Assembly: GCF_020745735.1 (NCBI RefSeq)
Contig: NC_083417.1
Span: 63,612,001 to 63,676,000, forward strand
Direction: 5' to 3'
Length of the DNA: 64,000 nucleotides
Origin: Hemiscyllium ocellatum
Lineage: Eukaryota
The position numbers were made by a program, and so were the translations under genes. Within the stretch, counting starts at the first letter, position 1. The number at the start of each line of letters is the position of its first letter. Below, one piece after another: positions 7,352 through 62,544 of this stretch. The notes under the pieces are model-generated. The model ran no database searches, was not told the origin of the DNA, and saw only the letters and a list, made by a program, of their open reading frames with translations.

Positions 7352-10300
7352 TAGAACATAGGACAATATAGCACAGAACAGGCCCTTCAGCCCTTGAGGT
7401 TGCACCAACTAGTGAACTTTCCTAAGCCATTCCCCTATACTAATCCATCATCATCTATGTGTTTATCCAAGGATTGTTTAAATCTCCCTAATGTGGCTGA
7501 GTTAACTACATTGGAAGGCATGACTTTCCACACCCTTACCAATCCCTGAGGAAAGGAGTGCCTCTGACATCTGTCTTAAATCTATCAACCCTCAATTTAT
7601 AGCTATGCCTCCTCATACAAGCTGACGTCATCATCCTACGAAAGAGACCTCCACTGTCTGCCCGATCTTATCCTCTGGTCATCTTGTATGTCTTTATCAA
7701 ATCCCCTCTTAGCCTTCTTCATTCCAATGAGAACGGACCGAAGTCTCTCAGCCTTTCCTCATAAGACCTTCCCTCCAGACCAGGGAATATCCTCGTAAGT
7801 ATTCTCCTCACCTTTTCCAATGTTTCCACATCCTTCCGGTAATGGGGTGTCCAGAACTGTACATAATATTCCAAGTGTGGCATTTTGTATAGAGGCAGCA
7901 TGACTTTACATATCCAGGACTCAATCCCTCTACCAATAAAACCTAACACACCATATGCCTTCTTAACAGCACTCTCAACCTGGGTGTTTCAGTGATCTAT
8001 GTACATGGATTCCAAGACCACTCAGCAAATCCACACTACCAAGAATGTTTCTATTGGCCCAGTACTCTGCCTTCCTGTCATTTTTCCCAAAGCGAATTAC
8101 CTCACATTTAGCTGTGTTGAACTCCATTTGCCAGCTCTCAGTCCAACTTTGCAGTTAATCCAAGGCCCTTGCAACCTGCAACATTCTTCCACCGACTTTA
8201 GTGTCATCTGCAAACTTATGAACCCATCCACCTATGACTGTGTCTAAGTCATTTGTAAAAATGACAAACAACAGTGATCCCAAAGCAGATCCTTGTGGCA
8301 CACCACTAGTAACCAGACTCCAGGATAAATATTTTCCATTAACCATCACTCACTACCTTTGTACAAAAAGCAAGTTTCTAATCCAAGCTGCTAAATCACC
8401 CTTAATCCCATGCTTCTGCATTTTCTCCAACAGCCTATCATGTGGAATTTTATCAAAGGCCTTACTGAAGTCCACGTGCACCACGTTAACTGCTCTACCC
8501 TCATTCACATATTTGGTCTCCTTCTCAAAAAACCCAGAGGTTTGTGTGACATGACCTGCCATTGACGAAACCATGTTGACTATCTGCAATCAAATTTTGC
8601 TTCCTCAATGATTATAAATCCCATCTCTTATAATCCTTTCCAAAAATTTTCCTACAACAGATGTAAGGCTCACTGGTCTATAATTACCTGGGTCATTTCC
8701 ACTGACCTTCTTGAACAAGGGCACAGCATTTTTAATCCTCCAGTCGTCTGGTACTAAACCTGTAGACAATGATGACTCAAAGATCAAAGCCAAAGGCTCC
8801 AACATCTCCCTATTTTCCCAGAGACTCCTTGGATAAATCCCATCTGGTCCAGGGAACTTTCACTCCTTCCAGAATTAACAACACCTCCTTACTAACCTTG
8901 ATCCTTTCTAGTCTAATATGTCATGTCTCATTCGTCTCCTCTACAATATTCTCATATTCCTGAGTGAAAACCAATGAGAAATATTCGTTTAGCACCTCTC
9001 TGATCTCCACAGGATCCAACACAACTTCCCCCTTCTGTCTTTGACTGGCCCTTTTCCTACCCTCGTCATCCCTTTATTCCTCACAAACCTATAGAACGCC
9101 TTTTGGTTCTCCTTTACTCTACCTGCTAAAGGCAGCTCATGTCCTCTCTCTGGTCTTCTTAACTCTCTCTTTAAATCCTTCGTCGCTAATCTGTAGTTCT
9201 CCATCGCCTCATCTGAACCATCTCATCTCATTGTCACATAAGCCTCCTTCTTCCCCTTAACAAGAGATGTAATTTCTGTAGTAAATCACGTTTCCCTTAA
9301 TTTATCACTTCCTCTCTGTTTGACAGGGACATACCAATGAAGGACATGCAATATCTATTCCTTAAACCAGCTCCACATTTCGATTGTCCCCTTCTCCTGC
9401 ATTTTGCTACCCCATTCTAAGCATCCTATATCTTGCCTAATCGCATTATAATTGCCCTTCCCCTACTGATAACTCTTGCCCTGTGACAAGTACCTATCCC
9501 TTTCCATTGCTAAACCAAATGTAACCAAATTATGCTCACTTTCTCCAAAGTGCTCACCTACAACTAAATCAACACATGACCTAGTTCATTACCAAGCATG
9601 AGATCCAGTGTGGCCTCCCTCTTGTTGGCCCTTTGACAAACTGTCAGGAAACCTCCTGCACACATTAGACAAAAACTGATGTATCCAACGTACAAGAGTT
9701 ATAGCATTTCCAGTCAATTTGGGGAAGTTAAAGACCCCATAATGACAACCCTGTTCCTTTCACTCCAACCCAGAATCGTTATGCTGATCCTCTCCTCCAC
9801 ATCTCTGGAACTCTGTGGAGGCCTACAACAAAACTCCCAGCAGTGTGACCTCTCCTCCCCTGTTTCTAACCTCAGACCATACTACCACAGTAGACGAGTC
9901 CTCATCAAAAGTTATTTCAGCAAACGTTATTCTGTTCTTGATCAACAAGGCCACAGCTCCCCCTTTTATCCAGTCTTTTGTGTTCTGAATGAAAGATCTA
10001 AACCCTGGGACCTGCAACATGCATTTCTTACCCTGCTCTATCCATGTCTCCAAAATGGCCACAACATCGAAGTATCAGGTACCTATCCATGCCGGAAGCT
10101 CACCTACCTTATTTTGGAAACCTCTGGCGTTGAAGTAGAAACACTTCGAACCAGCTTGCTGTCTGCCAGCACATTCCTGTGGCTGCGAAATCCTGCCCAT
10201 GTCCTCCCTACTCTCATGCTCCTGTGCACTGGAATTGCACCTCAGTTTCCCAACCCCTTGCTGAGCTAGTTTAAACCAACCCAAATAGCAGCAACACATT

Positions 10301-11070
10301 TCCAACCAAGGATATTAGTATCCCTCTGGTTCAAGTGAAGACTGTCCTGTTTAGAGGTCCTACCTTCTCCAGAATATCAATGTATCAATTATCACTGTAC
10401 CTGAAACCCCTCCTCCTGCACTACCCCTGCAGCCACGTGTTCAGGAGATATCTCTCCCTGTTCCTTACCTGGATATCACGTGGCCTGGGTAACAAACCAA
10501 AGATAATAACTCTGTTTGTTCTAGCTTTTAGTTTCCACCCTAACTCCCCAAAATCCTGCCTTACATCCCTATCTCTCTTTCTACCTATGTCGTTGGTGCC
10601 TACATGGACTACGACTCGGGGCTGGTGACCCTCTCCCTTCAGGACCTCAAAGACAAACCTGAGACATTACAGGCCCTGGCACCTGGGGGGCAACACACCA
10701 ACCGTGAGTTTCATTCATTCCCAAAAAACCTTCTATCTGACTTTCTAATTGAGTGCCCAATAACTAGCACTCTCCTCCTTTCCCTCATTCCCTTCTGTGC
10801 AACAGGGACAGATTCTGTGCCAGAGATCTGCACCCACTGCATGCCCCTGGTAAGTCATCTGCTCCGAAAGTATCCAAAATGGTATGCTTATGTTTCAGGG
10901 GAATGACCACAGCGGATCCCTCCACTGACTATTTTTTCCCCTTTCAAATGGTTACCCAGCTTTCTTCATGCCTAGGAGTAACTCATTCCCTGTAACTCTT
11001 ATCCATCACAGCCTCTGCCTCCTGAAAAATCTGAAGTTCATCCAGCTCCCGCTCCAGTTCCCTAACACAG
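7352..11070 (-). mobile_element. Long CR1-clade (HER1-type) LINE: endonuclease + reverse transcriptase, frameshifted, with upstream ORF1-side sequence
   Basis: Minus-strand ORF pieces: GGAVALLIK (APE endonuclease), PLFKK..DPGNYRPVSLTS, VDFSKAFDKIPH, VTSGVPQGSALG..KFADDTK, YYVQFWTPHYRKDVETLEKV. ATAGAACATAG tail at 7352. Confidence 0.92.
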
Positions 11071-15489: not shown

Positions 15490-17585
15490 GAAAGACAATT
15501 ATGATGCGATTAGGTAAGAGTTTGGTGCATGGGATGGGGAAGGAAACTGCAGGGGGTGGACACAATTGAAATACGGATCTTATTCAAAGAACAGCGACTG
15601 CGTGTTATTGATAAGTATGTACCTGTCAGGCATGGAGGAAGTGGTCGAGCGGGGGAGCCGTGGTTTACTAAAGAAATTGAAACTCTCATCAAAAGGAAGA
15701 AGAAAACTTATGCCAGGATGAGACGCGAAGGCTCAGTTAGGGCACTTGAGAGTTATACATTAGCCAGGAAAGTCTAAAGAAGAGCCAGGAGGGGACAAGA
15801 GAAGTCGTTGCCAGATAGGATCAAGGAAAACCCTAAAGTCTTCTGTAGGAATATCAGGAATAAAAAAAAATCTAGAGAAAAGTTAGGGCCAGTCAAGGAT
15901 AAAAGCGATAAGTTGTGCGTGGAGTTTGAGGAGATGGGGAAGCGCTAAATGAATGTTTTTTCTCAGTAGTCACACTAAAAAAAGACTGTTTTTGAGGAGA
16001 ATACTGAGATGCAGTAGATGGGATCAAGGTTCACAAGGAGGAATTCTGGAGAGTGTGAAAAAAGAGAAGTCCCCTGGGCTGGATGGGATTTGTCCTAGGC
16101 TTCTCTGGGCGGCCAGGGAGAAGATTGCAGAGCTTTTGACTTTGACATTGATGTCATCGTTGTCTACAGGAATAGCGCCAGAAGATTGGAGAATAGTAAA
16201 TGTTGCCCTTTTGTTCAAAAAAGAAAGTAGAGACAAACCTGGTAATTATAGATTAGTGAGTTTTACTTTGGTTGTGGATAAAGTGTTGGAAAAGGTTATA
16301 AGAGATAGAATTTATAATTATCTGGAGAGGAATAGGTTGATTATGTATAGCCAACATGTTGTTGTGAAAGGTAGCTCATGCCTCACAAACCTTATTGAGT
16401 TCTTTGAGATGGGGACCAAACAGATGGATGAGAGTAAAGTGGTTGACGTGGTGTATAGGGATTTCAGTAAGGCATTTGCTAATGTTCCCCACAGTAGGTA
16501 ATCGCACAAAATGTGGAGACACAGGATTGAGGGAGATTTAATGGTTTGGATTAGAAATTGGCTCGCTGAAAGAAGACAGAGGGTGGTGGTTGGTGGGAAA
16601 CGTTCATCTAGAGTTCAGTTACTAGTGGTGTACTGTAAGGATCTTGGGTCCACTGCTGTTTGTCATTTTTATATATGAACTGGATGTGGCCATAGAAGGA
16701 AAGTTTGGTAAATTTGCGGATAACACTAAGATTGGTGGAGTTGTGCATAGTGCTGAAGGATGTTGTAGGTTAGATAGGTACATAAATAAGCTGCAGAGCT
16801 GGGTTGAGAGGTGGCAAATAGAGTTTAATGAAGAAAAGTGTGAGGAGATTCACTTTGGAAATAGCAACATGAATGGGCTAATGGAAAGATTCTTAGTAGT
16901 GTTGAAGAACAGACAGATCTTGGTGTCCATGTGAATAGATCCTTGTAAGTTGCCACCCATGTTGATAGGGTTGTTGGGAAGGCAGATGGTGTGCTCGCTT
17001 TTATAGGTAGAGGGACTGCATTTCAGAGCCACGCGGTCATGCTGTATGAAACTCTGGTGTGGCCACACTTGAGTTTTGCATACATTTCTGGTCACCATGT
17101 TAGGAAGGATGTGGAAGCTTTGGAAAAGGTTCAGAGACGATATAATAGGATGTTGCCTTGTATGGAGGGAAGGTCTTATGAGGAAAGGCTGAGGAACTTG
17201 AGGCTGTTTTCTTTCGCGAGATGAAGGGTGAGAGGTGACATAATTGAGACATATACAATCATCAGAAGTTTAGATAGGTGGACAGTGAGAGCCGTTATCC
17301 TTGGATGTCGGTGGCTAGCATGAGGGGACACAGCTATAAATTGAGAGGTGGACAGATATAGGACAGATGTCAGAGGTAGTTTCTTTATTCAGAGAATAGT
17401 GGGGGCAAGAAACGCACTGTCTGCAAGAGTAGTGGACTCGCTGACTTTAAGGGCATTTAAAAGGTCATTGGATAAACATATGGATGAAAATGGAATAGTG
17501 TAGGATAGTAAGCTTCAGATTGGTTACATAGGTCTGCACAACATCGAGGGCAGAAGGGCCTGTACTGCACAATAATGCTCTGTGT
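15490..17585 (+). mobile_element. 5'-truncated CR1-clade LINE (RT region) nested inside the Gmr1-like gag
   Basis: KSPGLDGICPRLL, LFKKESRDKPGNYRLVSFT, RDFSKAFANVPH, KFADNTKIGG, and a 3' end GGGCAGAAGGGCCTGTACTG...ATGCTCTGTGTTC. Confidence 0.92.
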
Positions 17586-27379: not shown

Positions 27380-29130
27380 ACAACTTTATGGAGATTTGAC
27401 AGGCAGAATTTTGAGGGACTACATAGCGTAGAATAAGGAGAGGCTATTCCTGTTCGTATATTAAAAATAACGAGGGAGTATTGTTATGAATTGATACCTG
27501 AAGGTCAAGGGTTTTGAGGGGAAAAAAGAGTTTGCAAAGTAAGCAATTCGGCTACGGAATAAATCGCCTTGAATGTAGGTGTTGGCGGTTCAGTTGAGGC
27601 ATTCATGAGGCAATTGGATGGTTGCTTAGAAAGAAATGGTGTGCAAGATATAAGGAAAAGGCTCTTGATAATGATGCTTGTTTGAAGAGCCGGTGCTGGG
27701 TATGAATACTACAATTCTGAATGGGTACTTGCATCAAAGAATTTAGCCCAAACTCGCGTCAAAAGCAGGAAGCAATAGTTAGTTGTCAGCGTGTGTGATC
27801 TGATACTGGAAGATTGTTTCCAATCCGATTCCACAGTGTCTAGTTCTGGCTCCATTGTTTCTCCATGATACATAACAGATTTCAATTTAGTGGGCATGAT
27901 TAAGAAGTTTGCAGATGATGCAAACATGATAATGTATTGACAATGGGGAAAGAAGCTGTAGACTTCAGGAAGGTAACAATAGATTAGTGACATGTCCAGA
28001 ATGTTAGTAGATGAAATATGATGTTTGTGAATGGTAAATAAGGCAAAATAATACATACCAAATAGCATGATGCTGTTGAACACAGAGGAACAGAGCGGCC
28101 ATTCAAAATATGTCCACAAATCCGTATACACAGCAAAATAGGTAGATATCTTTGTTTCGTCTTTAGCCGCAGGTAAGACCCCAGAAGACTGAATAATGTT
28201 GTTCCTTTGTACATGAAGGGCAACGGTGATAATGCAGGACATTATAGCCTGGTGAGACTAGCATCTGCAGTGGGGAAACTGCCGAGAATGTTTTTAAGTA
28301 CAGGATTTATTCGCATTTGGAGAAGAATGGACTTATTAGGCTAAGTCAGCATAGCTTTATGCGGAGGAGGCCTTGTATCTTAAATTTGATTCAATTATGT
28401 TGAGGAAGTGACAAAGATTATGAGTTAGGGCAGTGAATGTTGTCTACAGGGACTTCACTAAAGTGTTTGAGAATAGAAATGGGAACATCAGGTTGAGATT
28501 GCAGATGATATTAATGAACCCTCTTTTGGAGTTTTGCGTGCAGTTCTGCTCGCCCCATTATAGGAAGGATCTTACTGAAGAAGGTTCAGAAAAAAAAACA
28601 TTTTTCAGGATGTTGCTGGAATTGGCAAATACAAAAATATACCAAAATGCGCTGAATAGACTGGGACTTTTCCATTGGAGTGTGGGAGATTGAGGCGTGA
28701 CCTTATAAAAGTTTATGTAAGCATGAGGTGGATAAAAATATTAATAGCAAGGATCTTTTCCCTAGGGTAGGGGAGTTCAAAACTAGGGACCATATTTTTA
28801 AGATAAGAGGAGAAAAATTAAACAAGGACATCAGTGGCAACCTTTTTACAAAAAGGTGTTTCATGTGTGGAATGAACTGCCAGAGAAAATGGTGGATGAA
28901 GGTACATTTAAAATATTTAAAAGACATTTGGATTAATACATGAAAAGGAAAATTTGGAGGGATAAGGGCCAAACGCAGGCAAGTGGGACTCTTTTAGTTT
29001 TTGAGTATGGTCAGTGTGGGCTAGTTGGAACAGAGGGTCTATATCCATGCTGTAATTCATATCAATGACAAACTTGTAATGATCATAGAAAGGATACAGA
29101 AGAGGTTGACGAGTACGGTGTTAGAGATTT
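27380..29130 (+). mobile_element. Stack of decayed CR1-clade LINE fragments
   Basis: KKFADDAN, NVVYRDFTK, LEFCVQFCSPHYRKD, DLFPRVGEFKTRDHIFKIRG. The minus ORF 27709-28242 is its antisense reading. Confidence 0.7.
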
Positions 29131-29503: not shown

Positions 29504-29558
29504 ATGACAGCCAACACCATTTTTCTCTGCGTGATTCTCCAATGGATTATTCATATAG
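29504..29558 (+). CDS. Gene B exon 1: signal peptide MTANTIFLCVILQWIIHI
   Basis: 55 nt, phase-1 donor AG|GTATCA, same size as the gene D leader, hydrophobic core, frame-compatible with the V exon. Confidence 0.8.
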
Positions 29559-30354: not shown

Positions 30355-30480
30355 GTAAATGAATATGTTGAGCAGGGATCTTTTGAAACAGTTTTATTAT
30401 ATCCTCTTTGTCAGTATAAAGGTGGCTATTAATACAATTCGCGATCATGCTCCTTGTTTAAATCTACTAATTAGACAGAT

Positions 30481-30655
30481 AAAAATCACACACCACCAGG
30501 TTATAGTTCAACAGGTTTATTTGGCAGCACTAGCGTTCCGAGCGCAGCTCCGAAAGCTAGTGATTCCAAGCAAACCTGTAGGACTATAATCTGATATTGT
30601 GTGAGTTTTAACTTTGTACACCCCGATCCAACACCGGCACCTCGAAATCATGGCT
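30481..30655. mobile_element. Penelope-type inverted-repeat element in the gene B V-C1 intron
   Basis: AAAATCACACACCACCAGGTTATAG is complementary to CTATAATCTGATATTGTGTGAGTTTT. Centre GCTCCGAAAGCTAG; same family as 4625-4791. Confidence 0.7.
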
Positions 30656-30861
30656 AATTAGACATGTAGCGTCACACGCAAATTGCGACCAAATGATCTA
30701 ATATTAATCAGTTAGACTGGAACTGCAAAGGCAACATATGCATCAACTTAATTATCGCGAAAACTCGGAACAGTGTTCAAGTTTCTAACAGATTGAAAGC
30801 TTTTGTGTTATTGTGTTCCTCTCCCATCACCTTTCCCAGCTACATGTATACCGCCCTGTTC

Positions 30862-30975
30862 CTCGGTACTCTCAAGTGAAGAAGGGTCACTAGACCCGAA
30901 ACTTTAACTCTTTATTTTCTCTATAGATGCTACCAGATCTGCTGACTTTGCTAGCAATTTTTGTATTGTTTCTGA
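30862..30975 (+). mobile_element. Penelope-type short element with degenerate hammerhead core
   Basis: GTGAAGAAGGGTCACTAGACCCGAAACTTTAAC...ATAGATGCTACCAGATCTGCTGA. Confidence 0.55.
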
Positions 30976-31792
30976 GTCCCTGTGTAATACGCATCTCCGA
31001 ACCAAACACCTTGCTTAGGTTTTTTTTAGTGCACGTTTCCGCCTAACGTTGCCTTGGTTAATCGGCATGCCTGAAATTTAATCTCACATATTGTCAGAAT
31101 TGAGGAATTCAACGTCACTGAGCTGCTAATTGTCGAATAAATGATTTACCCACGATCTGGAGCTTCAAACACATGGATTGCATCACTAGCGCCCAATAAA
31201 TAAAATAAACAGAGGTTCGGTTTTCCTGAAATCTCTTGGTCTTCAGCTGAATGCATTGTATTCCAATAATTGTTATACTCCAGCTACGAGTTATTCCAAA
31301 GCTGGTAAAGCCCCCATTTATCACAAAGATTGTGCATATTGTTGACCACATACCTCTTAGTATGTATCAAACATGTAAAGATTCATTGTTTCAACCGACT
31401 CCCTTAAATTTCGATTTTGGATTATGGAAGCTAAACACAACGTAATAAGACTTTTCGATTGCTCTGCCGAGTAATTTAAATTTTGAAGAACTCGAAACGT
31501 CACATTTGTTTTCTCTCTACAGATGCTGACAGACCTCCTGTAATTCCGTTTTGATTTATGTTAATTCAAAGTCTTGGTGTTAATAACATAGGTAAAATTG
31601 ACTCAGTCGTCGATTTCTATCTGAGGCATTGAGAGGACGCGCATAAAATATGTTTAAGATTAAAAAGAAAAGAGTCTGCGCCTTCGAATGCCGTCGTAGT
31701 AAAAATAAGCGGTCTGAACTTAGATAAGAACAATACTTAGTTTCTCCTAAACTCATACAGTAACTTAATTTTGTTCATTCTGTGCTTTGCAG

Positions 31793-32104
31793 CGGCCCCA
31801 ACACCACTAACTATTGTCTCCGGGCTATCAGAAGGGAATTCCTCTGCATCACTGGCTTTAAACTGTGAAACAGCTGCGTTTTATCCGGAAAATCTCACAC
31901 TCACTTGGTATAAGAATGGTGTTGAATCTGCATTCGGAATAAAGACAAGTAAAATAAAAAACACGGAAGGACTATATAAAGTTTCCAGTACTTTAGTTGA
32001 GACGCAATCTGTCCTGAGTGGCACTAATTATACCTGTTCGGTAAAACACGTCTCTCTCCAGGCGCCAGCTGTTGTCAACTATACCGTTTGGAAATCTAAT
32101 CGAG
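31793..32104 (+). CDS. Gene B exon 3: C1-set Ig constant domain
   Basis: TTTGCAG acceptor, G|GTAGGA donor, 312 nt, phase 1-1. LNCETAAFYPENLTLTWYKNG...GLYKVSSTL...YTCSVKHVSL contains the C1-set hallmarks. Confidence 0.93.
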
Positions 32105-32830: not shown

Positions 32831-32944
32831 ATATTGCCCATATGCCATTTTACTACTCGTGCCTCAGATACATGGTGGGTAGACTGGCGTTTCTATTACT
32901 CCTGATTATCACCGGGTCGCACTGTGCAATAGAGTTTGAGAAAA
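32831..32944 (+). CDS. Gene B exon 4: stalk + transmembrane helix containing Arg
   Basis: ATCTTGCAG acceptor, A|GTAAGT donor, 114 nt, phase 1-1. DIAHMPFYYSCLRYMVGRLAFLLLLIITGSHCAIEFEK; Arg codon AGA at 32881-32883. Confidence 0.85.
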
Positions 32945-34521
32945 GTAAGTTTAATGTGATATTTTGATTTTAATACAGATATCAGTTGGTGATAGATTGA
33001 ACGTTAATGAGTATTCCAGGGAACGATCATTATTTTTGAACCAACAGTCTCTTTTCCCGACGAGTCACTGTGCTTTTTTCCCGGAAAGTAATAAATTCTC
33101 CAGTTCAAAACACAAAATTATGTGAAAAATGGATCTGATCAGCCAGATATCAGCAATTACAATGTTCACCGGCAGCAAGGACTGAATCAAATTTGACTTT
33201 ACACGCTCCGTTTGCAAACATCTATCCTGACACCGCAATTAGTTTTTGCGAGGTTTTGAGGGTGTTAGCCTTGAAATGGTTACAGACCATTGTTAGTCTC
33301 TACAGAGGATAGAGTTTCACTGTTGCAGAAATCAGCATTAGAAAAACAGGTTCAATTTTTGCACAATCTATAGAAATGTCTTTTTAAAAATCGCATTCAA
33401 ACCTTTTTAAAAAAAAATCATTATTTTTTAAAACAAGTAGGAATTGATGTGAAAGCTGTTCATAGCTATTTTATTGCTTCAACATAAGTCGAAGTCTAAA
33501 GCGAGCTTAACGCCGCGATCAACCGATCTGTTCATCCATGTATTTCCCACAGATGAAAATAACCAATCTTTGTAGTTTTGGACGTATTCTTGCAATGACA
33601 AATGCCTAACAGCAGGCGCTAAGGAATTAAGCTGGTTTTTCGAGAGTAAAAGGTCGCTGTTACGGAGTGCCATTTTCTTTCCCACGACCAGTGTGTTCCT
33701 GATATAACCAAATAAACAGACCGGAAAAAACCCGGAAAATGCCGTTGAAATCCAAATACATAGTAAAACAGCATAGTTCTACTTGCATATTATAAATCGG
33801 TTGTAAACTTTAGCACATTTATACCTGCGCTGTACTGAGTCCATTGACATATTTAGATATTTGTTACACAATGAGCGAACTAATTACGTACTTTCGCAGT
33901 CGCGATTATTGAACAGCATTCATCATGGTTTCTGCGCGTTATGTTTCACCATTGTTCAGTGTTTCACTAATAAAACAATGAAAAGCAATGAAGTCGGCAA
34001 TGAAGTATTTCCTTGTGGAGTGTACAGAAAGCATAGGTCTAAAGTGCTAACACTTTGCATTGGCGCAATCTTAACGATTAAAACCTCTAGAGTCATTCTC
34101 GAACAGGACCTCCTGTGAACATGCAAGTTGTGCTGAGAAGTGAATCAACCATCCAAAGATCACCACAGGTACTCATATTGCTGTGAGAAATGGTACTATA
34201 AAGTTGGTTGCCTGCAGTCATGTATTGTAGTTCAGGCTTTTTGCGCTTTTTTACAACCCTTTGCTTAATCCTTCGAGCACCAGCCTAAAAAAATCACGAA
34301 TTAACAATTTCCCAAAACATCAATTTTCAGACCAAACAAGAGAAGCACGGGACTGCAGAATAATCAAGCAGCCAAAGAAAACGGAAGAATATTTAAAAAT
34401 ACTGTCAGCCAAGAAGAAGCGTAACGTATCAAATGATTGCATCATTGAATGGAGACTGTAATCGTCTGCGGGTTTTGAGAGGACTTGTAGCTCAGGTTGA
34501 GGTTCTGGATGTAGGTTTGCT

Positions 34522-34738
34522 GCTGAGCTGGAAGTTCCGTTTTCAGACGTTTTGTCATCATATTAAGTAACATTTTCAGTCAGTCTTCAAATGAAGCACT
34601 GGTGGTGTAGCCCGCTTTCTCAAACTCAAACATATAAATAGAAAGCGGGCTACAGCACTAGTGTTTCATTTGGAGGCTCACTAAAGATGTTACTTAGTAT
34701 AATGACAAAATGTCTGAAAATGAAACTTCCAGCACAGC
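34522..34738. mobile_element. ~99-bp-arm inverted repeat from a Penelope-type family (decayed hammerhead-like cores)
   Basis: 34522-34620 is the approximate reverse complement of 34640-34738, with a 19-nt spacer. The right arm reads CACTAAAGATGTTACTTAGTATAATGACAAAATGTCTG. Confidence 0.75.
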
Positions 34739-34942
34739 ATACATCCAGAACAATAATTGTCTGTTATTTCATAGATACTTCTGGAAATTTCTGTAATAAA
34801 ACAACAATGTGCTTTTTTGAGAAATTAGTAGTTTTTAATGCAAGGTATGCCACACTATTTAGTCATCATGATGTGCATAGTCAATAAAACAAAATCCTGT
34901 TGGATCATTTTCTTCTCCATCAAACATTTGTGTGTTTTTCAG

Positions 34943-34968
34943 GTACTACTATAAAGCCTGATCTTTGA
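34943..34968 (+). CDS. Gene B probable last coding exon: STTIKPDL-stop
   Basis: TGTGTTTTTCAG acceptor; phase 1 continues the frame to TGA at 34966-34968. I found no ITIM-bearing exon downstream. Confidence 0.55.
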
Positions 34969-37900
34969 TTTGCATTCTGACCCCTAGAACAGACAATTCT
35001 TTTGATTTGTTTGATCTGTGAACTGGTGGAATCCTTTCCTGAACACAAACAACTCGATTCAAAGTAGGAGATGTGTTTTCCGATAATGTGTACGATTGTT
35101 CATTTTATTTCTAAGGGACCCATTTAGACAATTATTAGACAGGAGCAGAAGAACGACTAGCAGCTGAAAAATTGCAATGGATTTGTTTTAATTGAGATTA
35201 TCCCTGCTTCACAGTGGCTGGCTGATCACCTGAAGGACGGTCAATAATTATTTGAGTTGTTTTAGGATTATCTCACACCAATTCTACAACTGTGCCATGG
35301 TCAAAAGTTTATGACGAATTTTAAGGATAACTTTATAAAGAAGCTATCTCACAATTGTTCTGGTATGACGAATTTGTAATTTAACATGCTTTTTGGGATC
35401 TATAAAGTTACAATAGAAATTAAGAACAGACGTTTCCAAAATACTGTACTCCACTCGCAAAATGAACAATCTCTTGTCATAACTTTTCATGATGAATGAC
35501 ATTAACCTTTTTCCAAGCAAATACCATTTTGCTGCTGAGGACATTCAAATCCTATATTCTGTATAGTCTCTGTGGTAAAAAAAAATCTTGCTCGACTATT
35601 CTCCTTCATTCTTTCTGATTACATGAAAGTTGTCCCACGATCAGTCAGCTGCTAGGCGGTGGAATCATTTCATCACGACTTGCGCATCATACTATAGGAT
35701 CGATTTGAAAACGTTTGTCAATATTTTAACCATCACAGACAACGCAAGGTAAACTCAGCAGGTCGACCAGCAGCTGTGGAGAGAGAAACGGAATTAAAGT
35801 TTTCAACTTCTTTATGATTGTTCTTCAGAGCTGTCAGTCTTTTTAAATCCTTGGAGACAGGGGGAAAGGGAAACAAACAAATTCCCACTCTTTGACATTT
35901 AGCTGGCTCCTTTGATCTGATGTTGCAGTCTTCCTTTACTATTTATGTTGATCAATACTTCCTGTTATGACGCGTGATCTCACCAAATATGAAACCAAGG
36001 CCTGTCCTTCGCACTTTCACTACATGATGGACTTTTGTAGACACCATTCATCTGTGCCTCTTCGTTCCTCATCACAACTAAAAGTCTTATTATTCACGCT
36101 ACACATTTTTCTCAGATTTCAGCGCGTGAAATTCAATATTTTCTACGTTTGTGTCTTGCATCAGACTTGCGAAGTAGAAACATTGCCAGCAGCACGTCGC
36201 GTTCAGAACTGTCACTATTTGTTTGACTCCCCAAAATACGTTTACTGCAAATTGGATTGCGTCTCAATTAAAGTACTGGAAATGTTATATGGTCCCTCGG
36301 TGTTATTTACTTTACTTGTCTTTATTCCGAGTGCAGATTCAATACCATACCCCCACACAATGCGCCCTTCCCCGCAAATCACTACCTTTGAAGATAACCG
36401 GACTCCACAGGAAACAAACGAACAAAATGCAGAACCCGTGAGACATCTCTGGGCACGTCCTTCTTTTTCAGTTGGGTTCCTCTAACTTAACTTTTCTTTT
36501 GTCTCCTCTTGCCCATCGGCCTACACTATTCGTACTTCGTTTTGCCTATATGGTGTGCAATGCCAGCTGAAATACTTCTGGAAATTCAGGTAAAATGCAC
36601 CTGCTGCACTTAACTGTTTCCTCTGTTAATTCTTCAAAAACTTCTGTAAGACAAATACGATCTGCCTTTTTTATACATTCATGCTGACTATACTTGATTC
36701 CTTTCGAAAGATATTTAGTTTAGTGCTGAAAGACAGAGGACAGGGTGTGACGTACTTAAATCCTGAACTATTTACCCCCTATGAAGTTGCAATCAAGGTC
36801 ACGCTATATTTGTCATCTCAGAGTCATGCAGTAATGAAGGTCCACAGCACAGAAAAAAAACCTTACTGTTTTAAGCCGATATAATATATTGCCAAAAAGT
36901 TGATCTTAAGTGAACACACTCCAGATTATTTTGATAACTATGCATTCAAAAATAACAGAGCAGTTAAGAAAAACATGAACATTTCGGCGTTCTATCATTG
37001 CTCGATTCTGATAAGAGGAAAGATGTTTACCAAGGGTTAATTCAGATGCTCGAATTGGTTTGCTAAATGTTAACACAAGCAATAAAGCTGAGAAGGTTAA
37101 TTTTTTAAGTATTTGGTTAGCGCGATTCATGGTAACGTCACTTCTGTTGCATGACGGCATTAACGAAACATCACGTTTCATCGTAACTGCAACAAAAACA
37201 TCTAGCCTTAGCAGCTCTAGTAGGACTGCAAAAATGTTTAAAGGCCGCACTGGGCCTTCGAATTTCATGACAGACATCAGTCAGACAGATATATGAGAAT
37301 GTAATGCAAGTTCCATTTATTTTTAACACTTTAGTTATTTGTAAGCACACAACCAACACTATCTAATTGGCTAAGTGGAATCTAGATACAATCCACGCAT
37401 GTTCACTCTGACGAGTTATACTATTCTCGCCGAACTCAGGGTCTTCTCTTAATGTAGGTTGGTTAGCTTAATGATCCAGGTTATGTTTGGAATATAGCAA
37501 ATTGTCCAACTAATATTTCACATCATTGCCTACATTGGGTCACCAACACGTCCACTTTATTGGTTCAGTGGTTGTTCCCATCCCTTGGTGCCATGGCATC
37601 GTCCATCCACAAGGGCACGTCAATCCTTGAGTTTTATCTTATTATCTACTTATCGTCAGATGCAGGGTAAATCCCCTCTCTGGTCAGTTTTAAGTCATTA
37701 TCATTGCTTTGTATTTAGTCTTCAACCCTAGTCTGATTAACGGTAATGGTAGCTTATTTGCCTATTGGGCGTTGCTGATTTTCTCTCTCGTGCACCCTTG
37801 TTTTGCCAACTCACTCTCTCGTATGCTCCCAGCAGGGGCTGATTTGTGGTTTGTTATTACCTTGGTACTCCTCGGTTTTTGTCCGTTAGTGGTATGAAGA

Positions 37901-37977: not shown

Positions 37978-38910
37978 CATAATACAACAAGATCATAATA
38001 CATTGGAGGAAAAATTAGGCCATTCAGCCCATCGAGTCTGCTCCACCATTCAATCATGGCTAAAAACGTTTTCAACTGCATTTCCCGTTTTTTCCAGGTA
38101 ACCTTCGATCTCCTTGGCAATCAAGAAGTTATCTTGTTCTGTTTAATATGCACTCATTGACCTGGCCTCCACAGTCTTCTGTGAAAATGAATTGCACAGA
38201 TTCACAACTCTCTAGAGAAATAAGTTTCTTCTTATCTCCGTTCTAAAGGGTCTTCCCTTTACTCTTAGGCTGTGCTCCCGGGTCTTCGTCCCTCTTGAGT
38301 TGAGAGTGTGTTGCCAGAAAATCTTCATCCCTCTTGCCAGTGGAAATATTTTCCCAGCTTCCATTCCGTCCAGGCCATTCAGTATTCTGTAATGTTCAAT
38401 CATATCAAGCCTCATCCTTCTAAACTCCATCGAGTATCGCCCCAGAGGCCTCAAAAGATGCCCATATGTTAAATTTTTCATTTCAGGGATAATTCTCGTG
38501 AACCTCCTGTGGACCCACTCCAGGGACAATACATCCTTCCAGAGTTATGGGGTCCAACATTGCTCACAATTCTCTCAATGTGGTCTATCCAGCGCTTCAG
38601 AAGTACATATCTGCTTTGATAATCTTTCACACTTAAGGTGAATGTCAACACTGTATTTGCCTTCCTAAGTACTGATTCAAACTGCAGGTTTTCCTTAAGA
38701 GAAACCTGGACTAGGATTCCTAAGTCCCGTTGCACTTCAGACTTCTGATATTCTTCCTCATTTAGAACAGAGTCCACATCTATATTCTTCCCCAGAAAGT
38801 GCATCACCTCACATTTTCCCACAATGTATTTCATCTGCCACTTCTTAGCCCACTCTGTTAACCTTTCTAAATCTTTCTGCAGCCTCCCTCTCACCTCAAT
38901 AGTACCTGCC
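37978..38910 (-). mobile_element. 5'-truncated CR1-clade LINE
   Basis: Minus ORFs LQKDLERLTEWAKKWQMKYIVGKCEVMH and LEWVHRRFTRIIPEMK; reversed tail near 37980. Confidence 0.85.
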
Positions 38911-40174
38911 TCTTCGGTGCCTTTGGAGAGAAAAAATCCTTTTTCCAATGACAGGAAGTTAGAGAAAATACGACGTATGTGCATATTACGTAAATTGACG
39001 TGTACTGGTGGGAGACTTTGTTGGGATGTCCAATTCCCTGCGACACTGGTGCTGACTGGGCAGCCTTGGTATACATTGATAGTTGTCAAAGCAGTTCCAC
39101 ACCGAGTTTGCCTTTAAAGCTGTCTGTGTAGATATGACATTCTGTTTTCCTATTTCAATCCTGCAGCGTGGAGGATCCATCAACAAAAAGTTTAAAGAGT
39201 TTTGCTGTTGCATGTATTTCATGCTTTCATACCTTTGCCTACATTTGTTCCCTCCCCGTCACCCCTGGCCTGTTATTTGGGACAAATGGTCCTTTGCCAT
39301 TATTTGATGCCACAATCTGAGATTCATGTGGGTCACCACTTGGACTACGTTTACCAGTGAGAAAAGTGGACACTCTAGTCTGTTTAATTTCAATTTTTCA
39401 ACCTTGTAATGAATTCACCTTCTTCCCATGTTCCTGATCTGACATGTTTGCACAGTTTCATTATTTGCTATTATGCGTCTTATAATTTCTTCTTTAACTT
39501 TGGAGTTCTTTTTTCTCTCCCTCTCACTTATATAATTCCTTGAAGCAACTGGCTATTGCCATAGCCTTACTGATTTTCCGGGTGTGGTTCCCTGCTCTCT
39601 ACCTCCCAAGATTGTTTTTCACACAGGTTCTGAGCCTGTGGTGATCTCCCACAATATTTCATCATAGTCTGATCACTCACAACTCACACACTTTCGAAGC
39701 ACAGTCTCCTACTTGAGGCAATTGTCCACCATTTTCTAAATAACTAATAATCTAATCCTAATCAAAAGGAAAAGTGAGAGGACAGGACTGAAGTTCAGTG
39801 ACTCTGCTCTGCTACATCGGGCTTGTGTCTGAAGGCATTTTTTCTTTACTGAATTGCCATCTGATTCCTCGAGTCAATGCATCGGACATATGTTCAACAT
39901 GCCCTCAAGGATGACTTCGAGACTTAACTCCTGTGTATTAACTAAAGCAATTCCTCAACTGCGGTCATTTATCCATCAAACCAGAAAAAACTACTGGTGT
40001 ATTGACCCATAAACTAGTCGATTACTTCTATTTCCTTCACCCACTTAATGCATGGACATCACATGAGGACTTAACCTATAATTTCAGGATCAGGCTGGGT
40101 CATTGTGATGTATCAGGATTTGATGACGTGAATCCCAGAGTGACTTCAGTCACATTATGTTAGGGCGCACCTAG

Positions 40175-40363
40175 NNNNNNNNNNNNNNNNNNNNNNNNNN
40201 NNNNNNNNNNNNNNNNNNNNNNNNNNNNNNNNNNNNNNNNNNNNNNNNNNNNNNNNNNNNNNNNNNNNNNNNNNNNNNNNNNNNNNNNNNNNNNNNNNNN
40301 NNNNNNNNNNNNNNNNNNNNNNNNNNNNNNNNNNNNNNNNNNNNNNNNNNNNNNNNNNNNNNN
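40175..40363. other. Assembly gap (189 N)
   Basis: Run of N. Confidence 0.99.
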
Positions 40364-44253: not shown

Positions 44254-46499
44254 GTATGAGGCCAACAGACCTAAAAGTCAGCTCAACAATTTGTAAAATT
44301 TAGGAAAGAGTTGCAATTACAGTTTGTTGACATTAATAGTGATTTTAAAAAATGTTTCGAAATTGAACTATTGGAAATCCTAAAATCAACGTTTAGTTGT
44401 AATGTTTCCATGTAAAATTTTATTGCCCAATCTCATTGTCAAAACAAATTGATATCAGAATCATTCAACAGTCCATGAGCGCTCAGGTCCAGGCAATTTC
44501 TATTTTACTTCCAATTACTGGTCTAATTCATATTTAACATTTACATCACAAATTTCTTAACTGACCATATACATGCTATTTTAATGCTTCTAAGAGAAGC
44601 TACCAAATATATTATTTGTTGTCTGCACTCTCATTATGTCAGAAGGTAGTCTTGTGGGCAAGATGTAATGCAATTTTTTCTTGGGAGGGATAAAGAAACA
44701 CATGAGAGGGAATATTAAACGGATAAGGGCTGATCCGTGATTCACTACAATCATGAATGATCATCCAAACAAGTGCTTTTGCCCACACGTTTGTTATATC
44801 CCTTCATATCTTTGCCGTTTAGAAACTTTTCAACCTTTATTTACACATGCTCATATATATGCTCCCACAGTCTGGGGTAGGCAATGCCACAGACGCAAAT
44901 CATTCTAAAAAAAGAATTTCTTATCTCGGTACTAGATGACTTTACCCGTGCCCCTTGGTTCTCCAATCCCCAACTATGGGAAAATCTTTTTGTTATTCAC
45001 CATTTTCTTTTCCTTAAGTGATTGGTAGTTTTCAATGAGATCGCCATTATTTTGTGAAACGTTGGAGAGTACAGGCTCATTTTTCTCAATCTCTCTCCAC
45101 AGAACAATTCTGCCAACCCAGGAACAAGTCCTTTGTTGCACTCACTCCATTGCAGTAATATCCTTCGTACGATCAGGGGATCAAAGACACGCACATCACT
45201 CCAGGCGTGATCTAACCATGGTTCTGTAATATTGAAGCAAACCTTTGCTACTCCTGTACTCCAGTCCTCTTGTGGTATTGACTAACATTCATTTTTCTGG
45301 CTAAGTGTTTATTGTTCACCCGTACTAGCATTAAGTAATTTATTGTTGAAGTCAGACAGATCAGATTGAAATCTTCAGTGTACTACATAATATAGCATGA
45401 TCTCTTGTCATTTAAGAAGTACTCTGTACAACTGTTCCTCTTACTAAGTGAACACATGTTTCCATATCATCTTCTATCTCTACTCACCACCTCTGTCCAC
45501 TATGCTTGAAATTGCTTTGCATGGTCCTCACAGCACACATTCAAGTTTCGCTGGCATTTTAATTTATTTTTGTACTTTCGGTAGGTGTATCAGAATATAT
45601 CTGAAATTTCTGAATACTTCTTCAATGGATGCCATCATTCCAAACCTTCTTTGCCAATGCTTCAACCCACCAAATTTCAGTAGTTTGAATTTAATACCTC
45701 GTCTCAAATACATCACTTTCAAACATTATATAGACACACATATATAGAAAACTACAGTCACTCATCTCTCAAGATAATTTTACAGCAGGGTTATGCATCA
45801 GGCCTTTTCTACATAACACGAGATGCAAAATATCGGGGTCCCCAGATGTTTCTCAATACTGCTCTCCAGAAGACCATGCAAACCACATTCACAACCTTAG
45901 TGATGATTAAGTTTTCCAGTCTGTCCATAGATTGAAGTCACCAATGTGCAGACCTTTGGGGCTGGAAGGCATTTTGTGCCACTAATTTCACTTGCAACCC
46001 AGACCTGTGACACACGTAGCCGCAATCCATTCGTTCATTCTGAACCATTGTTTTTTCTGGGATTAACAAACAATAGTGTGGTAAGGTCCAAGTCTCTGAG
46101 AAGTATGTCTTGATTAGCTCATTGTACTTCACAATATTGAGATTTCATGTCAGTCGAATGAATACAATCCATATTTTTCTTAGCAAGAGCGAAACTAATA
46201 TCAATTCATTATCATTACTTCTTCTCACCATTATCTCTCAAGCCATTGATTAGACCACTGGAAAAGGGAAATTTCCCTTGCATATTGTTCTGGTCTCATG
46301 TCATTCTTTGCAGGATGTAGTTAGTTCGGACACTAGATCTATAAAGTTATTTTTTTAAAATAAAAATGTTAATCTGAGGATATTGGCATAGCTGCATACA
46401 TACGAGCAGTAGTTGAACCAGCAAATTATCTCGAGATTTCTTTTTAGGCAACGACAGATATAAATAACAAATTAAACTCTAATCCTGTTGATCTTGCAG

Positions 46500-46608
46500 A
46501 AAAATGATAAATACCAGTTTATCTGGATGTCTGGCTATGTGATGGGTGGACTGGCAATTCTGTTATTCATCATCATTGTTGGGTTCAAACTCTGTTCAAA
46601 AAATAACG
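46500..46608 (+). CDS. Gene C exon 4: transmembrane exon, neutral TM, out of frame by 1 nt with the canonical C1 donor
   Basis: ATCTTGCAG acceptor (same as gene B TM), G|GTAGGC donor, 109 nt. TM frame KNDKYQFIWMSGYVMGGLAILLFIIIVGFKLCSKNN starts in phase 0; A5 run at 46500-46504. Confidence 0.8.
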
Positions 46609-49218: not shown

Positions 49219-49341
49219 CCAGTTGCGACCCAAAACGTGATTTGTACTGCAGTAGAATTGAAAAACACCAATAAAACTTCAAGAGGTCGAGATGACCAAG
49301 AGGCGACAGCGTACGCACAAGTGAGGCTCAGAAGGTCATAA
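49219..49341 (+). CDS. Gene C exon 6: terminal cytoplasmic exon with degenerate ITIM (VICTAV) and ITSM (TAYAQV)
   Basis: CCTTCTTGTCTCATGCAG acceptor, phase 0. PVATQNVICTAVELKNTNKTSRGRDDQEATAYAQVRLRRS-TAA. Confidence 0.82.
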   Translation, partial: PVATQNVICTAVELKNTNKTSRGRDDQEATAYAQVRLRRS

Positions 49342-57719: not shown

Positions 57720-58034
57720 TTGCTGCTGATGTTCCTGTTGAAGTGTCCCAGAACCCCGAACATATCTATGCCACAACTGATACAAACATCACATTCTATT
57801 GCACGTTTTCTGTTTTTCAAGACAAACAGGTGATCATTTATTGGTCGAAACTTGGTGAAAATGAATTCATTCAGACTGGATCAGACGACAGGAAACGACT
57901 TTCCATCGAGAAAGGAAGAGCCTCATTACAACTCCTGAATGTCAGTGTCCAAGACTCTGGAGTCTATTATTGCAGACTGACACGCCCGGGAAACAGAGCC
58001 GCAAATGGAAGTGGATCAACACTTGTCATTCGTG
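57720..58034 (+). CDS. Gene D exon 2: germline-joined VJ-type Ig V domain
   Basis: 315 nt, phase 1-1, G|GTAAGA donor. VSQNP..ITFYC..IYWSK..LQLLNVSVQDSGVYYC..ANGSGSTLVI. Confidence 0.93.
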
Positions 58035-58261
58035 GTAAGAGATGTTCAATGGAGTAGACTGAAAATTCTCACACTTATTACAATTAGAAAAATGTAATTG
58101 GCATCACGTTTTTCTCTTCCTTGGGCGTTCCATTAATGCTTAAATTAGAAAATAAATGTCTCAAAAGAAATATTTAATTAAGAATCAGATGATATCCCTC
58201 TACGTCGAGGTTCCACGATCTTGATTTCCTAACATTGTTTCGATTATTTCATGCACGAAAA

Positions 58262-58565
58262 CTCGCACAGACCAACTAATCTGCACGTCTTTGGACTATT
58301 GGAGGAAACTAAAACACCCAGAGTAAACCAATAGAGACACGAGCGAACGTGCAAACTCCACACAGTCAACTAACCGTGGTTAATGCTTTGGTTTCTTCCC
58401 ATAGCCTAAAATGTGCAGGATATGTGATTTGACAATGCTAAATTATCCAGTAAAGACCAGGGATATGCAGGCTAGTAGGATAGGGTAGAGGACTGGGTCC
58501 GGGTAGTGTGCTCTTTGGATGTACGGTGCACTCTTGATGGATCGAATGGCCTCTGTATACACGGT
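58262..58565. mobile_element. HE1-type SINE pieces in opposite orientations (gene D V-C1 intron)
   Basis: ACTAATCTGCACGTCTTTGGAC...GTGCAAACTCCACACAGTC (minus) followed by AATGTGCAGG...ATGCTAAATT...GAATGGCCTCTG (plus). Confidence 0.65.
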
Positions 58566-60190
58566 AGACATGATTCTAAGCGTTTCCATGTCATTCAAGT
58601 ATGGATATTGAGTGGAAAATTACTTGAACATTGTTTAGTATAGGAAACATTTGAAAGTATTAAACTTGTTTTTGATGACTGTCAAAACAAAAACAGTCAA
58701 GCTAAAAGTCGTTTAAATGTATTTGAAATATAATTTCAATCAAAACAGGATGTGTAAATTTGCTGCATGTGATCAGCTTTGAATGTTGTGTGCCAGTTTT
58801 TCTGCGGTAAAAAAAGGAAGTCTTTGATGTTGCAAATTCTTTTTCCACATTATTACGTATTTTAAAGTGTTAGTTAACTATAGCTGACATAATGGCAAAA
58901 TGCTTTAAAAGCAGAAATCTGAACCTACCAGATAATTAGTGATAATGCTTGGTGGATACATGTTGACCAAAAAATTGGGACAATCACAATTAACTTGTCT
59001 GATCTATACTAGAGCATATTTTACTTTCATTGAAGAGGTCAGAATGGGCTTTGGTGTATTCTCCTGGATATACTGGCTGCTTTCCATTGCAGCGCTCTCT
59101 CCGTACGATTCTAAAGGATTGGCCTTGATTGTTTCTCCAAATCTATTGTGTAGAGCTTGGAGCTGACACCCGTCTTGGAGTGAAGCGTGTTTCCACGTGC
59201 TATGAGAACATGGTGTTTTCCAGCTCGAAGAATCAAACACTCGACTGTTTGGTCGCATTTGTAGTTTTCAGTTGATTTGGTCAGTTTTTGGTGGGCTAAC
59301 GCAAGACGGTGAATCACCTCAAATCCCTTCAGAAGCAGGAAAAAACTTAATAACGAATGTAATTACTTGTTTCTTGAATTTTGTAAACTCTATTTGCCTC
59401 AGTTTAAATCTCCGATATATCTCCCACTCTGAAGTAACTCGCGAAACGTAAGAGCATCTTTATCTAATTCCCTGACTGAGGCTATAGAGTTCTCAATCAT
59501 GTTATGCCTCCCATGTTTATTTCAGCAACAAGATGGATTGTGGCTTTGAGGCGACAATTCCTCTGCTCACTGCAAGTAGCCACACAGACTGAATATATTC
59601 TGGAAGTTTCCTCTGGTCACATATTGATGGCGTATTGAAGTTTGCCAAAAGGAAAGTTATCTCATCTTCACTACCGTGGCATCCTGAAATTCATTGAACA
59701 TTCTTTAATTTGTTTTCTTCCTCATCAGGTGATGCAGGAAAGATAAATTTGGAGATCCAGGGAAAATTGTAATAAATTTCGAAATCCAACCCCACTTGCA
59801 GGTTGCTATGATCCGAATACGCTATCTGGAAGGCCATTAGAATCAGGTTCAGTAGGAACTTCAAAAGGCCGTGGATCAATGCTTGAACCTGATCATTTTC
59901 ACACCGAAGGGAAAGAACAGATACGAGAAAATTATTGCATAATTCTTCCAAGAAAGCAGCGTGGGCAGGATAGACCAAAATAGCAGGTTTGCTGTACCAT
60001 CCTATGATTATATAAAAGACCATAATTGATAGACAAAGCATTCACTTCACCTTTACCACTCATGCTATTTGCTGTTATTTGCTGTTATAGTCTATCCAGA
60101 ATAATTGAAAAGGGTCCTCCATAAAATGGACGCCATTCTAATTTGCAGAGCAGACGAGATTGTTAACTTCCTTGTTCGTTGTTTCACCAG

Positions 60191-60505
60191 CTTCTCCAAC
60201 TCCATTGAGGATTGTTTCCCGTCCCTATGAAAGTAATGCACACAGTTCTTTGTCTTTGGCATGTGAAATGGATTTGGTTTTCCTGAACGGTCTGACTGTC
60301 ACTTGGTGCAAAAATAATCGAAGCACTGAGAATGGGATAAATACGACCACGAAACTACTCAGTGGCGCAGGGCTGTATAAAATTTCAAGCTATTTGGAAG
60401 AAGCACGGCCTATCCAAGGAAGAACTGTTTTTGTCTGTCTGATGTCTCAAGCGACCCTACAGATTCCAGCCATGGCCATTTACTTGGTCCCTATTTCTCG
60501 TCTAG
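60191..60505 (+). CDS. Gene D exon 3: C1-set domain, divergent
   Basis: GTTTCACCAG acceptor, TAG|GTATGA donor, 315 nt, phase 1-1. LACEMDLVFLNGLTVTWCKNN...GLYKISSYL...FVCLMSQATL. Confidence 0.88.
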
Positions 60506-60659
60506 GTATGATGCTACGCTCAGCAAACACAAAAACAAAAAAACTCAGATATAGTCTGACACAAAAGCTCAGAACATACTCGCACAATCCAAATTATAAG
60601 AAACCTGCAAGTGCAATATTTCTCTGCGCAAAATCTCACAACCTATGATTTGTAACGAG

Positions 60660-61880: not shown

Positions 61881-62298
61881 CCCTTACTGGCATGAACACA
61901 TAAAGCCTTCTTCTATTTTGTAGATCTCAATAACTGTATGGCAACACCACATTTCAATGTTTGCTGCTGAATGAGTCGGTGCTGGGAATTATACTGCAGT
62001 AATAACCATGGAAACTAAGCATTACCTGAGTTTTAAAAATCTGTTCAGTATAACAAGTGCTTCACCCTAGTCATAATTTCCAGAACAATCAGGTTCGCAA
62101 TTTTTGGCAGACCATATCCTTTGAATTAGTTACATCAAGACATACCTAACGTAATACAACTCCACAAAGGCATGCTTGAATAGAATTCCACATGATGACA
62201 GAGGAGTACAACTTGAAGCAATTAACTCGTTAAACATTGAAAAAAAGCTCAATTGTCATATATAGCACCATTTCTGAAAGTGAGTATTAATTTTCCAG

Positions 62299-62415
62299 AA
62301 GATGACAACATGTTTCCCACTTATTTACGGATCTTTGGATGCACAGGATTTGTACTGATGTTTTTGGCACTGCTGGCTATCATTAGAATGTGGCACATAT
62401 TCGGTAACCACAAAG
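62299..62415 (+). CDS. Gene D exon 4: stalk + neutral transmembrane helix
   Basis: TTTTCCAG acceptor, AAG|GTAAGA donor, 117 nt, phase 1-1. EDDNMFPTYLRIFGCTGFVLMFLALLAIIRMWHIFGNHK. Confidence 0.87.
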
Positions 62416-62544
62416 GTAAGATATCATACTATCATTTAACGGAAACCATTCAAAAATCAACAGAAGTAGTGAAATACAATATTGCTTTAATATTGGTATG
62501 AGTGTAAACGTACTTTGTTCTCAGTTTTTGCTTCTTTTTACACC

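Follow-up and report, generated by a model that had tools for sequence, protein, structure and literature searches.

A predicted short-tailed receptor gene with two membrane arginines in Hemiscyllium ocellatum: a plausible activating-type paired receptor

Anatomy of gene B and its 3′ end

The subject of this analysis is gene B, one of the receptor genes carried by a 64,000-nucleotide stretch of the Hemiscyllium ocellatum genome (contig NC_083417.1 of assembly GCF_020745735.1, positions 63,612,001 to 63,676,000), which is referred to as the window and whose own positions are used throughout. The window is vertebrate DNA of ∼38% GC and contains three tandem genes of one kind on the plus strand, each with an immunoglobulin (Ig) variable-type (V-set) exon followed by a constant-type (C1-set) exon, as assigned by Pfam; the V exons start at ∼30034 (gene B), ∼42899 (gene C), and ∼57720 (gene A). 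Gene B, for which a previous inspection of the letters alone (the sequence-only reading) had predicted an activating receptor, comprises leader, V(J), C1, and transmembrane (TM) exons, with all junctions AG/GT and phase 1, and with the frame open throughout. Its exons, the two arginine codons of the TM exon, and the two candidate 3′ ends are as follows:

29504..29558, plus strand: leader exon (MTANTIFLCVILQWIIHI), phase 1, GT donor; resembles the leaders of the family proteins P0152 and P0157
30034..30354, plus strand: germline-joined V(J) exon, Pfam V-set E 2.9e-08; AG/GT bounded, phase 1
31793..32104, plus strand: C1-set exon, Pfam C1-set E 2.2e-12; splice sites read
32831..32944, plus strand: TM exon, AG acceptor before and consensus GTAAGT donor after
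32866..32868, plus strand: AGA codon of Arg242, TM alignment column 12, five residues upstream of Arg247
32881..32883, plus strand: AGA codon of Arg247, TM alignment column 17, the residue flagged in the sequence-only reading
32945..33095, plus strand: alternative candidate 3′ end by read-through (SKFNVIF), TGA 32964-66, AATAAA 33090-95
34943..34968, plus strand: candidate terminal exon ((S)TTIKPDL and stop), acceptor AG 34941-42, TGA 34966-68, phase-1 compatible

The V exon terminates in a J-like strand (...GNGTGSRLTVY; pattern G-x-G-T-x-L-x-V), and only one C1 exon lies between the V and TM exons. In phase 1, the TM exon is translated to D-IAHMPFYYSCLRYMVGRLAFLLLLIITGSHCAIEFEK, the membrane stretch of which contains ...CLRYMVGRLAFLLLLIITG...; this frame is backed by 63% identity to the TM end of XP_038661932 from Scyliorhinus (P0001; tblastn, E 5e-05). 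The AGA codon reported at 32881 was recovered in this frame and encodes Arg247.

The exon STTIKPDL, which had been proposed as the last one, is an open and phase-compatible candidate with a moderate pyrimidine tract (12/18), and the first poly(A) signal beyond it is found ∼0.8 kb downstream (ATTAAA at 35793). However, unspliced read-through to SKFNVIF is an equally plausible 3′ end. Either candidate adds 7-8 residues and no Tyr. Between 32945 and 42700, that is, in the 9.7 kb from gene B to gene C, no family-type exon with an immunoreceptor tyrosine-based inhibitory motif (ITIM) was found, irrespective of whether the region was searched by tblastn with all family proteins and 41 ITIM tails, by scanning 47 plausible acceptors, or with a hidden Markov model of the tails that was run against every open fragment of the window. 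The tail exon of gene C, with a score of 19.3 bits in this model search, shows that exons of this type are within reach of the method. In every scenario constructed, the tail of gene B would thus be short and tyrosine-free, and the claim of a short tail devoid of tyrosine motifs is supported by this absence. For remnants of ITIMs downstream of gene B, tblastn and the tail model yielded noise-level matches only, among them two ITIM-like readings on the minus strand, SVAYLALKTTNFSKKH (34809-34856, 4.3 bits) and KNNDRSLEYS (33008-33037), which were not relied on; another one, VVYPAL at 38524, was rejected because it lies antisense within a reverse-transcriptase fragment of a long interspersed nuclear element (LINE).

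Two further features mark the 3′ flank:

34502..34751, no strand assigned: palindromic high-copy repeat in the putative last intron of gene B, reverse self-match 78%
36255..36348, minus strand: inverted C1-exon fragment, 94 bp, 89% identical to gene B's own C1 exon (31916-32009)

The palindrome, at which the word depth of the contig is thousands of times that of the flanks, looks like a miniature inverted-repeat transposable element. The inverted C1 copy and the two noise-level readings on the minus strand stand in the order expected of a decayed gene copy placed tail to tail with gene B, an arrangement that may record the rearrangement by which the tail of gene B was removed.

The membrane arginines and the ITIM-less forms of the family

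Arg242, which had not been mentioned in the sequence-only reading, is in frame and belongs to the same hydrophobic stretch as Arg247. Among the relatives aligned with MAFFT, Arg247 was seen in gene B alone. Column 17 is Gly in almost every relative, including P0001, P0156, P0042, P0152, P0153, P0154, P0157, P0002, and gene C, and because Gly is the family consensus at this position, Arg247 probably arose by a single change from G to A. Column 12, where gene B has Arg242, is also Arg in P0001 and P0156 of S. canicula, P0006 and P0042 of Hypanus, P0050 of Mobula, and P0034 of Mustelus (Mustelus P0178 has a matching ...SRCVMGG..., judged by eye), nearly all of which are without ITIMs, whereas Gly, Val, Ala, or Ile occupies this column in ITIM-bearing forms. 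The arginine common to the ITIM-less shark and ray relatives is Arg242, not the flagged Arg247.

A location outside the bilayer, which would have spoken against the predicted receptor, was predicted for neither arginine; both lie within the hydrophobic run, irrespective of whether it is delimited by homology to ITIM-type TMs or by the hydropathy optimum of gene B itself. Arg242 is three residues below the aromatic belt, and Arg247 is deeper. The place of Arg242 is that of a zeta/gamma-type position; an arginine in the upper TM pairs with the Asp pair of zeta or gamma (PMC13107469).

A full-library search with the V exon of gene B returned 184 proteins at E ≤ 0.001, the best of which were 67% and 65% identical. 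Those of the near matches that were looked up come from sharks, rays, and chimaeras and are predictions of RefSeq or of draft genomes; their automatic names are inconsistent (SIRP-alpha-like, SIRP-beta-1-like, tapasin-related-like, MHC class II beta-like, and tyrosine-protein phosphatase non-receptor type substrate 1-like). Only such names, and no paper, were found for a V(J)-C1-TM receptor family of cartilaginous fishes, and the database name SIRP-like is a label of similarity, not of orthology. Gene B has the same exon plan, domains, and tree clade as XP_038661932 of S. canicula and XP_067905013 and XP_067905931 of Heterodontus, but the second arginine (column 17) is its own. It fell into a starred clade of 11 rows of family proteins in the first tree and into no starred clade of the enlarged tree. 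As read from its exons, gene B is an apparently intact member of this cartilaginous-fish family. UrIg and UrIg2, described by Flajnik and colleagues, were ruled out as its family because they have three or more C domains.

The common form of the family has an uncharged TM (e.g., ...FYFWALGCAMGGLAFLVLLIVIGKRCR...) followed by a long tail that carries between two and five ITIMs. The cytoplasmic exons for ITIMs or immunoreceptor tyrosine-based switch motifs (x-x-Y-A-x-L, T-V-Y-A-Q) that are typical of this inhibitory subtype were not found for gene B between 32945 and 42700, and the tail of its closest protein, P0001, which has Arg242 in common with it, ends five residues past the TM. Among the 67 proteins with a recognisable TM, with ITIM and TM states coded by hand and three membrane-proximal or read-through regex matches scored as no ITIM, family-type ITIMs were absent in 18 of the 20 with a basic TM versus 12 of the 47 with an uncharged one. 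The TM-charge state changed at least 15 times on the V+C1 tree. In eight independent pairs on starred branches, ITIM loss went the same way 6.7 times and the opposite way 0.1 times on average (sign test, median p 0.016, range 0.008 to 0.22; p ∼0.125 with the smaller first protein set). These comparisons support the notion that a basic TM residue and ITIM loss have become coupled repeatedly within the family.

Single pairs illustrate the exchange. P0110 and P0105 of Heterodontus are located on one contig and are 87% identical through ectodomain and TM, but the former has CARGAL and a short tail and the latter CAGGAL and ITIMs, a Gly-to-Arg difference within the same GG motif. In rays, the Arg form P0042 of Hypanus (WVPRSAMGG) is matched by the ITIM-bearing P0184 of Hemitrygon (WVPGCAVGG), and the Arg form P0006 of Hypanus by the ITIM-bearing P0176 of Mobula, with Gly at column 12. 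The proposal that a point change together with tail loss could turn an inhibitory into an activating receptor is in line with the Gly consensus at column 17 and with the Heterodontus pair; it had been built, however, on gene C, which is the wrong partner (see below), and on Arg247, which is specific to gene B.

A third TM class with very short tails (P0158, P0164, P0040, P0043, P0061, and P0089) follows the pattern R...(D/E)H, in which an Arg close to the outer end is combined with Asp/Glu-His at the inner one (e.g., SRFTLSMLLILFLAIIIVDH); we take it to resemble strongly the FcR-gamma-coupled TMs of NKp46, CD89, and LILRA. As a separate observation, the 955-bp Logan contig P0194 contains an intron-free C1-TM reading of 150 amino acids with a TM arginine (FHIRHALGF) and no family-type ITIM, a hint that some elasmobranch transcribes Arg-TM forms.

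An ITIM-bearing look-alike and the reading of gene B

A gene with the opposite tail and almost the same V domain was found in Chiloscyllium punctatum, a member of a sister genus (locus L002, gene chiPu_0004839; BEZZ01000124.1:74101-94637). Its V exon is 92.9% identical to that of gene B at the nucleotide level, with 99 of 106 residues identical, and the differences (proportions of synonymous and nonsynonymous differences, pS 0.208 and pN 0.028; pN/pS 0.14) indicate purifying selection on the V exon of gene B. The C1 exon is 77% identical in nucleotides, and the leader and introns do not align. The TM of L002 is uncharged (...HYHWILICVVASSAFLIFVIGVCCKLKN) and is followed by ITIM exons (MHYAVL, RTVY, and VTYAIV). 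Genes C and A differ from their C. punctatum counterparts by a pS of 0.073, which is the ortholog baseline, and since the V exons of L002 and gene B exceed it about threefold, the two are paralogues; orthology was also rejected because alignment at the 93% level is confined to the V exon and does not extend into the introns. The C. punctatum locus orthologous to gene C (L001) begins at window position 37243 and so leaves out gene B. That genes with opposite tails keep near-identical V domains is the signature of paired receptors, and L002 would be a better inhibitory counterpart of gene B than gene C. The annotated chiPu_0004839, a V-only protein of 126 amino acids, represents only the start of a complete V-C1-TM gene with ITIMs (L002:10001-14900); the C1, TM, and two ITIM exons are located 0.7 to 4.4 kb downstream and are missing from the deposited model.

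Several known systems show parts of this design. SIRP-alpha and SIRP-beta1 have a V-type tip and C1-set domains and, like the family of gene B, occur in two versions, an inhibitory one with an ITIM tail and another with a short tail and a basic TM residue. The SIRPs are V-C1-C1 proteins, and SIRP-beta pairs with DAP12 through a central Lys; in contrast, gene B has a single C1 and two TM arginines instead of Lys, which sets it apart from the SIRP family proper. In TCR-alpha, the two basic TM residues are spaced by five residues, as in gene B, although the central residue of gene B is Arg and not conserved. The upper Arg of TCR-alpha binds zeta-zeta, and the central Lys binds CD3 delta-epsilon (PMC13107469). 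NKp30 (NCR3) and NKp46 combine, as gene B is predicted to do, an arginine in the top half of the TM with a short tail, and are assumed to assemble with zeta-zeta or zeta-gamma via an Arg/Asp-pair motif (PMC13107469). NKp30 also shares the VJ-type V domain but, unlike gene B with its C1-set exon, has no C1. The 60 best sequence matches to the V exon of gene B in the PDB, headed by the V domains of Ig light chains, TCR-alpha, and PD-L1, did not include an NKp30 chain. In LILRA/LILRB, KIR2DS/KIR2DL, and PIR-A/PIR-B, activating forms arose repeatedly from inhibitory ones by tail truncation and a basic TM residue while the ectodomains are alike, and the binding domains of paired receptors are homogenised (PMC3210942). 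Unlike gene B, however, these are C2/I-set families of the leukocyte receptor complex, and a survey from 2014 found no direct LILR, KIR, or PIR homologs in sharks (PMC4016189).

The best explanation of these findings appears to be that the ITIM tail of gene B was exchanged for a basic residue in the outer membrane helix, a recurrent subtype within the family. We consider it about evenly balanced (probability roughly 0.5) that gene B is the activating-type counterpart of an ITIM-bearing paralogue and acts via an adaptor with an acidic TM. The gene would then be transcribed, and its V domain would bind the same ligand as the ITIM-bearing paralogue; the short tail, whichever of the candidates is used, would not signal by itself; and once the helix is inserted, the buried Arg242, and perhaps Arg247 as well, would make stable surface expression dependent on a signalling dimer with acidic TMs, of the CD3-zeta, FcR-gamma, or DAP12 kind, through which the activating output would be delivered. 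A basic residue in the TM of a receptor binds the acidic pair of a signalling dimer and marks the unassembled chain for degradation, and NKp30, NKp46, and CD89 use an arginine in the upper half of the TM together with zeta or gamma (PMC13107469). Gene B is thus a plausible, though unproven, activating-type paired receptor.

A number of observations weigh against this assignment. No RNA run with any exon of gene B was found when public runs were queried with the whole gene and with the C1-to-TM segment (the hits were DNA-like only), and the protein collection searched held no predicted gene B protein. The inhibitory look-alike comes from another genus and not from the genome of H. ocellatum, and the charge/ITIM association depends on states coded by hand. 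Arg247 is absent from every relative and may have arisen recently as a neutral or harmful change. No TM in the comparison is less hydrophobic than that of gene B with its two arginines: an insertion sum, roughly calculated with the Hessa scale (Hessa 2005), amounts to +2.4 kcal/mol for gene B, +0.55 with Gly at 247, and −2.3 for an ITIM-type TM, and decay fits this marginal hydrophobicity as well as dependence on an adaptor does. On the side of the partner, the survey from 2014 did not find FcR-gamma in shark data, and this negative report was the only literature found on zeta, gamma, or DAP12 adaptors of sharks (PMC4016189). Finally, the 3′ flank is rearranged (the inverted 94-bp C1 copy and the high-copy palindrome), and the polymorphism data come from contigs in four DNA runs of other individuals, with 40 of 164 variants listed.

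Several of these points would also be expected if gene B were a recently disabled duplicate on its way to a pseudogene, with the ITIM exons taken by a rearrangement and with Arg247 as a harmful hit in a TM of no consequence. Silence in the RNA runs and in protein annotation, an arginine confined to this gene, marginal hydrophobicity, and the rearranged 3′ region with its inverted C1 copy and palindrome fit such a history, as does the decay of the neighbours (a frameshift and the loss of an ITIM tyrosine in gene C, and a V pN/pS of ∼0.77 in gene A). Nevertheless, we regard it as unlikely, albeit worth serious attention, because none of the four exons is interrupted and their splice sites are canonical, pN/pS of the V exon is as low as 0.14 over a synonymous distance of 0.21, and the V-exon polymorphisms among the variants listed are three synonymous and none nonsynonymous. 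The same listed variants include a single C1-exon polymorphism, at 32102, which replaces Arg by Gln in the stalk; none of them falls in the TM exon, and the reference TM exon was present in two samples (X3 with a share of 1.00; X2 as a contig covering 32537-33384, with a single difference at 33340). Moreover, the tail-less state and Arg242 are common to the nearest catshark protein and are therefore not a private accident.

The V domain, conserved with an inhibitory paralogue, would also suit a gene that is expressed but does not signal, that is, a tail-less decoy, or a poorly anchored or shed V-C1 protein, which competes for the ligand of the inhibitory paralogue and uses no adaptor. The tail is short under every 3′ scenario, soluble or TM-less models exist for relatives (XP_043563364 (P0010) of C. 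plagiosum, and P0026 and P0182 of Stegostoma), and FcR-gamma was not found in the shark survey of 2014 (PMC4016189). Such a protein has no need for a buried arginine, however, and yet column-12 Arg recurs in shark and ray forms without ITIMs and hardly occurs in those that have them. An Arg on the extracellular side of a TM is otherwise disfavoured, and we hold this role to be rather improbable. An elaboration of the activating-type assignment, in which the helix is TCR-alpha-like and a non-rearranging VJ-C1 receptor assembles, through its two arginines, with two distinct signalling dimers of the acidic-TM kind, is very doubtful; if true, a germline-encoded relative of antigen receptors would already use multi-module assembly in the style of the TCR.

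Paired activating and inhibitory receptors have been studied extensively in mammals, birds, and teleosts, and almost nothing was found on them in cartilaginous fishes. The comparison presented here suggests that the oldest jawed vertebrates repeatedly turn inhibitory V-C1 receptors into tail-less forms with a charged TM while the binding domain is kept alike, and this provides a concrete pair of genes for asking whether the basic-acidic TM rule operates in sharks, and via which adaptor, FcR-gamma having been reported missing there.

Neighbouring genes and repeats

The codon of gene C that is homologous to that of Arg247 is GGA (Gly; 46548-46550), one base different from that of gene B, exactly as the sequence-only reading had it. 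The ectodomain of gene C falls in a different clade, and gene C is not the inhibitory counterpart of gene B. Relative to the C. punctatum ortholog, 2 bp are deleted from gene C where its TM exon begins (window 46498-46510); a canonical phase-1 splice after C1 leads to Glu-Lys-stop, and the first ITIM of gene C (in 49228-49326) reads VICTAV instead of the VIYTAV of C. punctatum, which is a change from Tyr to Cys. Gene C has the look of an inhibitory gene in decay or of a soluble V-C1 protein.

For gene A (57720-62417), the TCT (Ser) given earlier for the same codon could not be reproduced; the residue is Val according to MAFFT, or Thr if counted from the shared Leu-Arg. A basic residue is encoded in its TM exon (62308-62417) at the outer edge of the membrane stretch (YLRIFGCTG...), a feature also seen in its Mobula relative P0079 (YLKVFGCIG). 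The C1 exon is without the usual FYP and WYKNG motifs, and the V exon, with a pN/pS of ∼0.77 versus C. punctatum, is under relaxed constraint; gene A may be degenerating.

Very high-copy repeats occupy 34442-34825 and 30410-30985, with a contig word depth of up to 10^5-10^6 compared with ∼10-50 in the flanking DNA. Fragments of LINE-type reverse-transcriptase open reading frames are interspersed between the receptor genes at 7700-10700 (minus), 15500-17300 (plus), 28400-28950 (plus), 38200-39100 (minus), and 60700-61550 (plus), and the window contains an assembly gap at 40175-40363.

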